Positions 16,269-64,000 of a stretch of 64,000 nt of DNA are shown one piece after another. The translations under genes and the position numbers were made by a program. Every line of letters begins with the position of its first letter. Position 1 is the stretch's first letter. Below the pieces are notes generated by a model that was not told the origin of the DNA, searched no databases, and saw nothing but the letters and a program-made list of their open reading frames with translations. Source of the stretch: Styela clava (Eukaryota); NCBI RefSeq assembly GCF_964204865.1, contig NC_135264.1, positions 6,820,001-6,884,000 of the forward strand, written 5' to 3'.

Positions 16269-18740
16269 TCACAATTTTTGTCTCATTTTCATTTCAACAA
16301 ACTTCAAAGAATATTCATGGCCTTTCCAAGTTCTCCAGACTACCGAGATTGCGTATTGTGCCTTCCCTCCTTTGATATACAGCCCATTTAAATTTGCTGC
16401 ATGACAAGCTGCGTACCAGAACGCTCCCTTGAAAGTAACAGCACAGTTGTCAGATGCTGTGTCATGATCTGCGTCCTTAGTTGTGAAGGATTGTCCTTGA
16501 TGGGCGACTAAAGAGTCTCCAGTATTCCCACTGTATTGACCAACCGTTAAACGATAATTTGTTGAAGAATCGCCAATTGAGAATGTACTAGAAATGTTAG
16601 AGTAAATCAAAACATGCATTTATAAACTTGATTCTAAATTGATTTAAAGGTTCGATGTCATACCCATATTTAGCATAGGCTTTGTTTCCTTCCCAGTCTT
16701 CCATGTCTACTCTGAGTTCATACGTTTTGCCCTTGAGGATCTGGTAGATATTTTCTAAACCTAAATAAATGTTGTAAACTTTCTGCTAATGAATTGAGAT
16801 TGCACGTTAAATTCTGGGAATGCCAATTGAGGATCCTATGATCGATCAATTCTTTGTGAGGAGTAAAAAACTAAAAAATTATTGATTTTATATCGACATA
16901 ACCCGGGATAAGTTCTCTCAATAGCTGTAAACTGCTTTGTTTCAAATAGTTTTTTTATACAACGTTTTATGCGGCTTAAGTTAAGGTTTAAAATTAATCA
17001 TATGGCGTTCTTCATCATTCAACAACTTATCAACCACACTTTCAGTAAGATCCCAAGTTAGTAAAATTCCCACGGGAATGACATTTACGTGGCCAGTTCC
17101 GATTAATAGTGCGTCGATGCGGGTGAGCGAAATCATTTTAAGATCATAACATATTTGTCCTATTTGTCAATGAAAAAATGCAATCTTTTCATAACTGGGT
17201 ACATTACAAAGCTTCCAGTTCACGCGAACCAAATTTGAACAAAATGATCAGGAACAAGAAAAATCTTTTGCTGATTTTCTATGTATCCGGATGCACAATA
17301 TGCATGTTTTCAAATAGAGAAAAAAAGTGCACGTCGTCCGTCTATTTGTAAACATATTATCACAAAGCCATTGATAGTATTTATGTGAATGGACAAAACT
17401 CACCAAGCCAAAATTCTCCAATCGTATTTCCAAACCCATTTACATAATCATTCCATCCACGATAAAAGTCCTCAGAGCCATCCATTCGACGTTGAAATAC
17501 CTTTGTGAAAACATTACACTTTCATGTTTTTGTTGTTATTTTATATAAATACTTTAGATAATTTTTCAACTAATTTTAATTTGATTGAGTGAATCGATTC
17601 AACTCACAATCCATCCTCCTCCATTTGTCACGAGATCACAGTAAACTTCAGTCTTTTCAGAAACAGGGGTAGGATAGATTTCAAAAACTCCTCCGGTTTC
17701 ATTCCGAAAAAGAGAATTGAATTTGTGTAATCTTCGACAACTATCCGGATAATACCGTTCTGAATATAATTTGCAACTGTTCCGCGTATATTTGCAATGC
17801 CATGGTGTTTATTTTTTCTTTTGTATGGAATATTTATTCGGCAAAATTTTACTCTATGGTAACTGTGGACTATAGGAAAAATGAGAATCGATTGCACAAT
17901 TCATTAGCGTCAATTCAACCACCACAATTCAACCACCGAGAATATATTTGTGTCATCGACATATGTGCTAGATTAAAACAAGGCTATATGTCAGGAATTG
18001 AATCCCAGTTGATGAATATATTGAGTATATGCCCACAAAACATAGAGTAATCGGGGACGTAATGGGGACAGCTTTTATTAGGTGAAATCAAGTTGGACCG
18101 ACTGTGGATTGCTTTATGACTAATGACATACGATTTAAATACCCATTTTTACCTCTGTGCAATGCTTCTTCCAACTTATTGTATTTTTCATTCAGACGGC
18201 TTTCCGCTTCTGCAATGTTGAAAAGAAACTAATTGCTAAAACCAATTTATTAAAATTACATGTGGATAAATTGTGTGTTGATTACAGTGCCAAAAACCTG
18301 ACGCTTGAAAATGGGTAGTTGTTTGATAAAGATTTATTTACTTATACATGACTGTGTGTGCCAAACTACATATATATACTGTATTACATATTACGAATTG
18401 CTCGTCTGCATTCATGAAAATCAAAAGAAGACCAGGATAGATGTATGGATTCAATATTACAAATAGTACCTGAAATGTCCTCTGATATTTTGGTATTGAC
18501 ACGATTGTAATCAACGATTCCAGGTTCTCCTTTTGGTCCCGGCATACCACGTGGACCAGTTTTTCCAACACGAGCAAACTTTGTTGTCTGATGGGCACAT
18601 GATTCACTCTGTCCACCACTTGTTTGCTGTAGTTTGCAGTATTCGTACATCTTTGTACAGAGTCCGGTGTCTTCTTGACCTACGACTAACCGACTGTACA
18701 ATACAAGTACAAGAACGATGTATATGTCGTATGAGCTCAT
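16269..18740 (-). CDS. Ficolin-like fibrinogen-related protein A (signal peptide, short collagen, coiled neck, FBG domain), intact, 330 aa
   Basis: Exons 18740-18470, 18209-18153, 17759-17608, 17500-17404, 16760-16664, 16587-16269 (993 nt, in frame). Six Gly-X-Y ([18 protein letters not shown]); FBG motifs [78 protein letters not shown]. Confidence 0.93.
17066..17079. promoter_or_regulatory. EBF/COE-type palindrome in intron 4 of gene A
   Basis: ATTCCCACGGGAAT matches ATTCCCNNGGGAAT; retained as ATTCCCAAGGGAAT in gene D at 44774-44787. Confidence 0.35.
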
Positions 18741-20512
18741 GTTACTTTCAATTTATCTGGAAATCGGAGTATATTTCATTCAATTGAATAATAGGTTTTG
18801 TGCAAATATAGTTAACGATATAAAGAGGTAGTCTAACTAGTGATCCATATTTAATTGTAATATTCTTGTAGAATTACGCCTGTGTACCTTCTGCTATACA
18901 CCTATTGCTATTTAAGATATCATGAATATGAATTTAACTTAAAAGTCTGACCACTAATTCTTTCACACGCTCTCAGATATTTTGAGAAAGTTGTTAATTC
19001 AATTTTTGAATGCCTTTCATTTGCTTAGTCTCTCCCCAGGGAGGTAAATGAATATACGATGTCGTCATTCTAGTCGTTGTATTTTCGTTATTGAACTGAT
19101 TCCTGTATAATCGATTTATGGATAATTTATTTCAATTACGAACTATTTCTGAACCTATCATTATGGCATTACCATCTTCAGCAGTCATTATTTTCGCGAT
19201 TTGTATTTGTTAGATTTTCTCGGTGAAGTCCATTCGTTTTCTTATTTCGAATTAAGGACCCCAACAGAAAACGTGTACGAATTAATAAATATTGGGTAAG
19301 TGTGAAATAGAAAAGGGAATACTACCTGGAATGGCAGTCGACCGCGGAAATGAAATGCAACTCGACACCATCTAAGAACGCTGTACTGATTTCCAACTCC
19401 CAGCCCTAGTTCCAGATTGAAACTATTTTTGAAAACTATATTTTTTCAAATCTACTGTTTCTCCTCTGATGAATTTTTGTTTTGTTATTAAGCTTCTAGT
19501 GTTTTTGGCTGCTTGTCCAGATCTTTGTTTGAAAAAAATGAACATTTTGTTTACAAAGGCTGTGATGAAATCGAAGTAGCCCCACCTATCGTGGCATACG
19601 AAGCACAGTCAGTATGAGTCACGTGGCCAAGTGAGCCATTTGTTTATGTGCATTATGGTTGCGACCTCTCATAATTGTTGTTCTCGTGTTTTTTCATTCC
19701 AGGCATGGAATTGTTCAAGTCAATAAGAGACAAGATATCAGTATAAAGATATCGCTATAAAGACTGAGTTTATTCTAAAAAAAATCCGAGCTTTTGTGAA
19801 AGACGACACCATGTGTATAGATGCGCTTTGCCTAAATATAAATTATTTCTTTCTTCAAAAACTCCTTCAGTAATTAAACTCTGCTCTATCTAAATAGATT
19901 GCATTTTATAGTTTAGGGCTTACCAAATGTTTTTCATGAAGAGTCGGATAATACGAGGACTTACAATCGCGATGAAATCATTATTAAATGGGTGAATTTC
20001 GTTACAATCGTTGATTGCTTTTGTTGGCGTTTTGTAAATATTTAGTCTGTGAACTACTTTATATATATCGGTTCCTCTACTTTTCCCTATCTCACAAGTC
20101 TGTCGACTTAGTTACGTACGCCTTGGGCCACGAGGACATGGACGATGGATGTCTCTGCTATAATTTATCAATAAACTCTCGTCGATAATATCATTTCTTT
20201 GAGCTATCAAGCGAACGGTACCATTTTAAACGGCGATGCTTTTCCAAATAAGCTATGCTCTTTGATGTCATTAAAGTTTTTATCAGATCACCGATAAGAC
20301 GAAACATAAAGACGCCACTTAAACTGGATATCTTTATTAAACAAGCCAAGGTATTCCAAAAATAATTTTTGTCTGTTATCAAAAGCCCATTGCTAGTATA
20401 TGATCATCATAAGAAATTCTAGATTTGTGTAAGATATTATTAATATTGCAAAGTATATATTTTACAAACGCTGAAAAATGTGAACTCTATGTGAACTTTT
20501 TATATAATTCGG

Positions 20513-63763: not shown

Positions 63764-64000
63764 ATGGTTGGAATAATCAGTCCCATATCAGTCTCCTTAG
63801 AACAAAAAAGAGAGTAGAACTATAATCATAGCCATAACAATAATAACAAGCTGATACGGGTAATCCTCATGGTTAAAATTTGATTCGACAACATCTTTAC
63901 AAAAATCTTCAAATAATACAATTTTTTTTTCAAAATATGAAATATTGCGTTTTTTTTCTTGTAAACAGCCTACGCTTTCAAAAAAATTGACTAATGTTCT
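63764..64000 (+). pseudogene. Further collapsed lipocalin relic (runs off the window)
   Basis: ATGGTTGGAATA start as in L1, immediately deleted into intron-1-like sequence; collinear with 60620-60860. Confidence 0.65.

Follow-up and report, generated by a model that had tools for sequence, protein, structure and literature searches.

Fibrinogen-related lectin genes interleaved with ApoD-type lipocalin genes in Styela clava: a mixed cluster probably formed by passive co-duplication

We have analysed a stretch of 64,000 nucleotides of the Styela clava genome (contig C19:6820001-6884000, referred to as the window) in which genes for lectins with a fibrinogen-related domain (FReD) alternate with genes that we assign to divergent lipocalins of the ApoD type. 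The window is AT-rich (31-39% G+C in 2-kb bins) and contains no runs of N. FReD genes were mapped by tblastn with the six exon peptides of one of them, gene A, used one at a time, which yielded four complete exon sets and four fragments. Exon-wise tblastn and blastn comparisons placed all the elements in exactly the order and orientation that had been claimed in a first-pass annotation made from the sequence alone, i.e. FReD genes A and B (minus strand), a lipocalin relic (minus), lipocalin L1 (plus), two FReD relics and a lipocalin relic (plus), FReD gene C and a FReD relic (plus), FReD gene D, a FReD relic and lipocalin L2 (minus), and finally two lipocalin relics (plus). The same annotation had counted four full FReD genes with at least four relics, and two intact lipocalins with four relics. 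The lipocalin count was correct, with L1 and L2 both having six exons separated by GT-AG introns; the FReD count holds for the number of genes and relics, but gene D is frameshifted, leaving three intact genes and one that is complete but broken. None of the 10 longest other ORFs of the window matched Pfam, in line with the claim that no more than two families can be recognised in it. The features are as follows.

16269-18740, minus strand: FReD gene A, intact, six exons (18470-18740, 18153-18209, 17608-17759, 17404-17500, 16664-16760 and 16269-16587)
20513-22642, minus strand: FReD gene B, five exons, collagen-like and helical exon absent, 275 aa, intact and transcribed
24588-25156, minus strand: lipocalin relic, reduced to pieces of exon 1 (25030-25156) and of exon 6 (24588-24663), detected by tblastn/blastn with the L1 exons
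27394-29980, plus strand: lipocalin L1, exons 27394-27507, 27874-28022, 28179-28261, 28697-28777, 29688-29771 and 29844-29980
32248-32867, plus strand: FReD relic retaining exon 4 (minus 4 aa), exon 5 and part of exon 6, detected by tblastn with the gene A exon peptides
34165-34248, plus strand: FReD relic, exon 5 only
36266-36612, plus strand: lipocalin relic, two tandem copies of exon 1 with an in-frame stop, of the long type found in protein P0007
36976-38914, plus strand: FReD gene C, five exons, collagen-like exon absent, 266 aa, intact
41720-42002, plus strand: FReD relic, exons 3 and 4, both partial
43995-48429, minus strand: FReD gene D, six-exon layout as in A, one base missing near the beginning of exon 5 (44426-44521)
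49834-49941, minus strand: FReD relic, fragment of exon 6, 41% identical, containing a stop
55429-57904, minus strand: lipocalin L2, six exons, 214 aa, identical to NCBI XP_077965650.1 (P0011)
59666-60948, plus strand: lipocalin relic, made up of one copy of the repeat (~1 kb) that flanks the lipocalin genes on the 5' side and of an exon 6 remnant at 60903-60948
62804-63776, plus strand: lipocalin relic, another copy of this 5' flank repeat, breaking off just inside exon 1 (63749-63776)

Pfam family PF00147 (Fibrinogen_C) was matched by the last exon of A (E 4.4e-31), the last exon of D (1.5e-32) and exon 4 of D (3.1e-07), and the last exons of B and C matched it in the whole-genome scan. Nine ORFs of the window were run against Pfam, of which three matched above the cut-off and two below it. 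A full-length FReD in open and spliceable exons is present in A, B and C, but not in D. Gene A has six exons with GT-AG introns in phases 1,1,0,1,2 and a coding length of 993 nt (330 aa by arithmetic); B and C have five exons each, also with GT-AG introns and with lengths divisible by three (828 nt and 275 aa for B, 801 nt and 266 aa for C). Compared with these three genes, D is one base short at codon 3 of exon 5 and its exons sum to 1001 nt, so it is frameshifted as assembled. Intron 4 of D (44550-46630) includes about 1.9 kb not found in A, B or C, a piece of which (46350-46517) resembles another part of the window (6676-6879). Judging from this resemblance, the extra segment is probably a mobile-element insertion.

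The cluster FReD genes have two architectures. Exon 1 of A and D codes for a leader of hydrophobic residues, then a Cys-rich part and no more than five Gly-X-Y triplets, for which the Pfam Collagen match stayed below the cut-off (E ~0.01), and exon 2 (57 nt) adds a short segment of 19 aa that is probably helical. B and C have no triplets at all, and a donor inside exon 1 (G/GTGAAT, at 22504/22503 in B and 37105/37106 in C), where A and D have AGTGAA, splices directly to the first FReD exon. The B junction, which joins the end of exon 1 (22504) to the start of the FReD exon (22038), was recovered in contigs from two sequencing runs, X1 and X2. In known ficolins the collagen-like part has a length of about 11 or more triplets, and a long domain of this type was found in none of the four genes. 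Searched against the PDB, the last exon ranked FIBCD1 (3.9e-33) and tenascin-R (7.2e-32) at the top, followed by tachylectin 5A (TL5A, 2e-29) and by ficolin-1 and ficolin-2 (2.3e-28), with tenascin-C also above the ficolins; this is an order of scores and not a tree. The first-pass label of "ficolin-like" was therefore right about the presence of the FReD and overstated in the rest, given the five or zero triplets and the higher rank of FIBCD1 and tenascin. The label is loose, and the cluster lectins are more safely called FIBCD1/tenascin/ficolin-type FReDs.

Three features of the FIBCD1, tachylectin 5A and tenascin FReDs align with the last exon of the cluster genes, namely the Asp-rich stretch, the pair of Cys residues and the His that follows the second of them, although the N-terminal architecture of these proteins is different. 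Among the four paralogues (16275-16586, 20519-20854, 38591-38908 and 44001-44321) most of the differences were concentrated in an indel-rich loop after 'GDSL', with 0-7 extra residues. The aromatic position before 'KGAFWY', which we take to be a binding-site residue in FIBCD1, is Phe in A and C, where FIBCD1 has Tyr, and Tyr in B and D, as in FIBCD1. In A and D, moreover, the brief collagen-like part starts with a G-K-T-G-P stretch, presumably similar to the MASP-binding motif.

The second family is represented by L1 and L2. L1 has a coding length of 648 nt including the stop (215 aa by arithmetic), with the donor of exon 4 set by comparison with the natural protein P0001, and L2 has 642(+3) nt. 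Each of the six L2 exon cores occurs letter for letter in P0011 (positions 0, 38, 88, 116, 143 and 171), so L2 is the annotated gene. The region containing L1 (27.3-30.5 kb) aligns with the reverse strand of 58.0-54.9 kb, with islands of 87-97% identity on a background of about 80%. A repeat of ~1 kb (72-83% identity) was found five times, at 25129-26106, 26550-27406, 57894-58565, 59666-60621 and 62804-63776, as the immediate 5' flank of L1, L2 and the relics. This repeat contains a 158-aa ORF that has no Pfam match, and it is probably promoter-region DNA that was copied together with the lipocalin gene. In the stretch between the last FReD relic and L2 (49-54.5 kb), an ORF of 79 aa (51379-51618) resembles by eye a fragment of a retroelement reverse transcriptase, with no Pfam match.

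Lipocalins are characterized by an N-terminal G-x-W motif, a central T-D-Y-x-x-Y and a later Arg. L1 and L2 carry GTWF, FFMTDYDTYF and HFRT, and HMMER aligns the G-x-W and T-D-Y-x-x-Y motifs colinearly to ApoD, Per a 4 and RBP. When a profile of the family was compared with the PDB, all nine chains at E<=10 were lipocalins, belonging to four different proteins: ApoD (0.026), Per a 4 (0.027), RBP (0.36) and six sandercyanin entries. The ESM Atlas model of the paralogue P0013 (70% identical to L2, pTM 0.72) gave six structural matches, all of them lipocalins with TM scores of 0.52-0.57 (an ApoD-like protein, C8 gamma, a Bla g 4-like protein, ApoD twice and one bacterial lipocalin), and the eight-stranded beta-barrel is seen in the model of this paralogue only. 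Furthermore, the intron phases over the six coding exons are 0,2,1,1,1 in both L1 and L2, the pattern stated in the relevant part of PMC3184775 for an amphioxus lipocalin and for vertebrate ApoM and Ptgds. The idea of an additional symmetric exon in the cluster lipocalins was rejected, since this six-exon structure is the canonical one. On the basis of the motifs, the PDB profile matches, the intron phases and the paralogue model, the L1/L2 family is accepted here as one of predicted divergent ApoD-type lipocalins.

With Pfam the cluster proteins are not recognised as lipocalins. A six-frame search of the whole assembly with PF00061 gave no match in the window and one weak match on another contig, the exon pieces being short and divergent. 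None of three natural cluster proteins had a lipocalin match in Pfam, and among the five members of the family alignment only one did, the distant intronless paralogue P0009, below the cut-off (E 0.0031). A comparison of the family alignment with E. coli Blc by hhalign reached a probability of 1.4% over 15 columns (0.1% for the EF-P control), which lends no support, and was judged insensitive, as it sets one distant sequence against a shallow profile; a phmmer search of the PDB with the intronless paralogue had an unrelated peptidase as its sole match (E 0.92). An exhaustive HMMER search with exon 2 of L1 (50 aa) retrieved eight proteins at E<=0.001, three of which are lipocalin-like proteins of S. 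clava (P0001, P0002 and P0007). The others, P0003-P0006 (937-1513 aa) and P0008 (245 aa), were discarded as spurious; the match in each consists of 4-12 short, repeated segments, and the Pfam matches of P0003-P0005 are to unrelated families. HMMER and word-based searches (the latter with 2 of 87 and 3 of 1173 candidates) detected relatives only in S. clava and none in other organisms.

Compared with the ApoD-type lipocalins (ApoD, crustacyanin, Bla g 4/Per a 4, RBP4 and C8 gamma), the cluster members share the size of ~215 aa, the leader, both motifs, the six exons with their phases and the predicted barrel, and they differ in the missing Pfam lipocalin match and in having relatives found in S. 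clava only. The description of both families as secreted was also borne out, since an N-terminal hydrophobic leader, judged by eye, is present in the FReDs and in the lipocalins, making them probably secreted.

Both families are under purifying selection and the window copies are of similar age. L1 and L2 are separated by 21 synonymous and 24 non-synonymous differences (dS 0.187, dN/dS 0.27), and six FReD pairs compared over exons 3-6 gave dS values of 0.21-0.32 and dN/dS of 0.19-0.29. Purifying selection on both implies that both make working proteins. The presence of intact genes beside relics, together with these values (dS ~0.19-0.32, dN/dS 0.19-0.29), is what is expected under the birth-and-death evolution proposed in the first-pass annotation.

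We have also mapped both families over the whole genome. The genome lists are lower bounds, with 150 of 718 FReD candidates and 150 of 330 lipocalin-like candidates scored. Searches with the L2 protein and P0007 located lipocalin last exons at 22 loci, every one of them on C19 (5.35-6.93 Mb). For the FReDs, a 23-nt motif from exon 4 had 32 exact matches, 30 on C19 and two on C3 (54 when up to 3 mismatches were allowed, against 0 for a reversed-pattern control). The 30 matches on C19 fall in two groups, 22 at 5.33-6.08 Mb and eight at 6.837-6.907 Mb, with none between. The first group corresponds to an array at C19:5.33-6.09 Mb of about seven tandem units with a period of 93-102 kb, each of them with three FReD and two lipocalin genes; at two of its loci (L015 and L020) the lipocalin begins 2.2 kb past the FReD stop on the same strand. 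Matching 10-kb samples of neighbouring units were 98.6-99.9% identical over stretches of 7-9 kb in 10 of 10 locus pairs, indicating a very recent amplification or, possibly, assembly redundancy. Directly to the right of the window there are four further FReD genes, followed by P0007 and one further lipocalin.

Inside the window the picture is different. All the duplication blocks that can be recognised are family-specific: A pairs with D, B with C, and L1 and its neighbouring relic with L2 and its own. The idea that B with the adjacent lipocalin relic, and C with the relic adjacent to it, had been duplicated as one unit was dropped, as the exon 1 relics beside B and C are of different subtypes and no block contains both families. 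The term "co-amplifying" used in the first-pass annotation therefore applies at the scale of the region, with its ~100-kb units that include both families, but not to the blocks within the window.

Outside this region the scored matches of the two families lie apart. At C3:18.48-18.54 Mb there are at least eight FReD last exons, including the two nearest relatives of the C19 subfamily (76% identical in the last exon, with the exact exon 4 motif), and no lipocalin match was found near them among the scored matches. Neither was a lipocalin found, among the scored matches, beside more than 100 other FReD loci of the genome. The distant intronless paralogue used as query produced the 330 lipocalin-like candidates; among the 150 scored there are dozens of full-length ORFs of 217-250 aa distributed over most contigs. 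These intronless ORFs have a leader and the G-x-W and T-D-Y motifs; about 14 of them lie in a run at C1:7.106-7.142 Mb and one falls within the C19 region (6.245 Mb). Between the at least 147 lipocalin-like and at least 124 FReD matches outside the C19 region, the nearest pair is 37 kb apart. Within the region itself, a stretch of ~750 kb without any FReD motif or exon match contains five lipocalin loci out of the 22 (6.41-6.73 Mb). Linkage within the genome is thus obligatory for neither family. A chance model with at least 82 lipocalin and at least 52 FReD places predicts ~0.43 adjacencies within 10 kb and a probability of one or more of ~0.35; the lists of places being lower bounds, the true expected number is higher. 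A single founding adjacency is therefore unremarkable, and segmental duplication accounts for the remainder.

Co-expression of both families was examined with assembled contigs over 22350-28349, a region that includes exon 1 of B and exons 1-3 of L1. The contigs come from four small runs (X1, X2, X7 and X11) without tissue labels, whose RNA nature was guessed, and they can reveal presence but not absence or level. In X1 and X2 the contigs cover exon 1 of B (22504-22653) and continue into the next exon of this gene, so that these two runs contain RNA, while exons 1-3 of L1 were covered in none of the four probable RNA runs, in what are presence-only data. X1 and X2 contain 7% of the words of a 9.7-kb query (window 20400-30100), approximately the size of one B transcript. 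The B contigs end at 22653, 11 nt upstream of the ATG, where sequencing adapter follows; B seems to have its own start with a very short leader, and read-through from the upstream lipocalin relic is not indicated. The check thus found B spliced in two runs and L1 in none, a pattern that speaks weakly against co-expression.

We consider that the interleaving of FReD and lipocalin genes is likely the result of passive co-duplication of chance neighbours. The window is the right-hand part of a 1.6-Mb region of C19 (5.33-6.93 Mb) with ~30 FReD and 22 lipocalin loci belonging to two secreted families expanded in this lineage. One founding FReD-lipocalin adjacency would have been multiplied by tandem and inverted segmental duplication, and the copies would then have undergone birth-and-death decay. 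From family membership alone, the probable ligands are acetylated glycans for the FReD proteins of the cluster and, for the lipocalins as carriers, a small hydrophobic molecule. Several observations weigh against passive co-duplication. The same-strand arrangement at ~2 kb recurs, and both families have been kept intact through many duplications, something that a selected pairing would also predict. Joint duplication is directly seen only in the upstream array, where the units are so alike (98.6-99.9%) that assembly redundancy is possibly involved. Moreover, FReDs of other subfamilies could be located in the apparently lipocalin-only stretch, since only 150 of the 718 FReD candidates were scored, and the contigs from four small runs of guessed RNA cannot show absence or level of expression.

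The first-pass annotation had proposed for this locus a co-regulated module of recognition and small-molecule sequestration. One alternative is accordingly a selected, two-component secreted defence cassette, kept together and co-regulated, whose lectin would detect microbes and whose lipocalin would take up a small molecule from the microbe or the host. Some vertebrate lipocalins act in immunity, and the accumulation of ~30 FReD and 22 lipocalin loci in a single 1.6-Mb region, the same-strand pairs ~2 kb apart in the upstream array and the purifying selection acting on both families would all be in agreement with such a cassette. The ficolin genes of S. clava are expanded and many of its expanded complement genes are highly expressed at metamorphosis, as described in the relevant passages of PMC7540406. 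However, co-expression was not seen (B in two of four runs and L1 in none, from contigs that report presence only), no FReD match accompanies five lipocalin loci out of 22, no lipocalin adjoins the C3 relatives or the other FReD loci (more than 100) among the scored matches, one of the partners has decayed in most units of the window, and one adjacency by chance has a probability of ~0.35. The module is thus not supported by the linkage, which is not obligatory, and we regard the cassette as unlikely. A more specific version, in which the same-strand pair of FReD and ApoD-type lipocalin ~2 kb apart would be a selected defence cassette of stolidobranch sea squirts, with the lectin marking the target, the lipocalin capturing a small molecule there and selection on pair dosage having driven the increase to ~30 and 22 copies, appears slightly less likely still.

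Two other explanations concern the history of the region. Part of the co-amplification could be an assembly artefact, in which the approximately seven upstream units of 100 kb would be haplotypes or collapsed repeats placed in tandem; the true copy number would then be far smaller, and older copies like those of the window would be the only real ones. The identity of 98.6-99.9% over 7-9 kb and the many copies with equal match scores are what such an artefact would produce, but the units differ by indels (L018 and L023 are 98.6% identical with 15 gap openings) and their boundaries vary, with periods of ~93-102 kb. Furthermore, the DNA runs X3-X6 contain 59-73% of the words of window 20400-30100, although this concerns the window and not the array. 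We find the artefact improbable, but a little less so than the cassette. The adjacency could also be an old chordate linkage, derived from the same ancestral neighbourhood as human 9q34.3, where we take FCN1 and FCN2 to lie within ~1 Mb of lipocalin genes (among them LCN1, OBP2A, PAEP, PTGDS and C8G). The cluster lipocalins do keep the ancestral chordate exon pattern 0,2,1,1,1 (given in the relevant part of PMC3184775). The OLF and Notch families were used as markers, on the assumption that they are neighbours at 9q34, and they gave no support: among 27 OLF exon matches only three are on C19, all in one locus at 9.7 Mb, 2.8 Mb off the cluster, and the three Notch LNR matches are all on C5 and C10. 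In addition, the cluster FReD exon is closer to FIBCD1 and tenascin than to ficolins, and both families are found at dozens of other genome locations. Shared ancestry with 9q34 was therefore rejected as a candidate, and we hold this old linkage to be very improbable.

Passive co-duplication would make this locus similar to other clusters of mixed families subjected to birth and death, such as the vertebrate immune receptor complexes, with two unrelated families interleaved by segmental duplication and intact genes found beside relics. The FReD genes share with the known ascidian ficolin/FReD families the C-terminal FReD, the secreted layout and the tandem expansion, and A and D also the Cys-rich N-terminus and a short Gly-X-Y stretch. 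They depart from the ascidian ficolins in that A and D have only five triplets followed by the 19-aa helical exon, and B and C skip both by means of the donor in exon 1. The relevant passages of Wei et al. 2020 (PMC7540406) report 54 'ficolin' genes for S. clava, and ascidian ficolins, including those of Halocynthia roretzi, are covered in PMC5465252; lipocalins are not mentioned in the relevant passages of these two papers. The first-pass statement that no such locus had been described agrees with the entries listed by full-text literature searches on FReD or ficolin together with lipocalin and on tunicate lipocalins, none of which describes one.

The locus is, for the most part, ordinary: a birth-and-death cluster of two hugely expanded secreted families of S. 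clava that would have become neighbours once and been copied jointly afterwards. About 22 genes that appear at NCBI as "uncharacterized protein" can now be assigned as putative ApoD-type lipocalins with the ancestral chordate exon pattern, and the FReDs of the cluster come in two architectures, the collagen-less one confirmed by the spliced transcript of gene B. The locus also provides a clean and testable case for the question of whether genes that are physically amplified together are coupled in function as well. Should both partners prove to be co-expressed and to interact, they would represent a new kind of humoral defence pair of invertebrate chordates.

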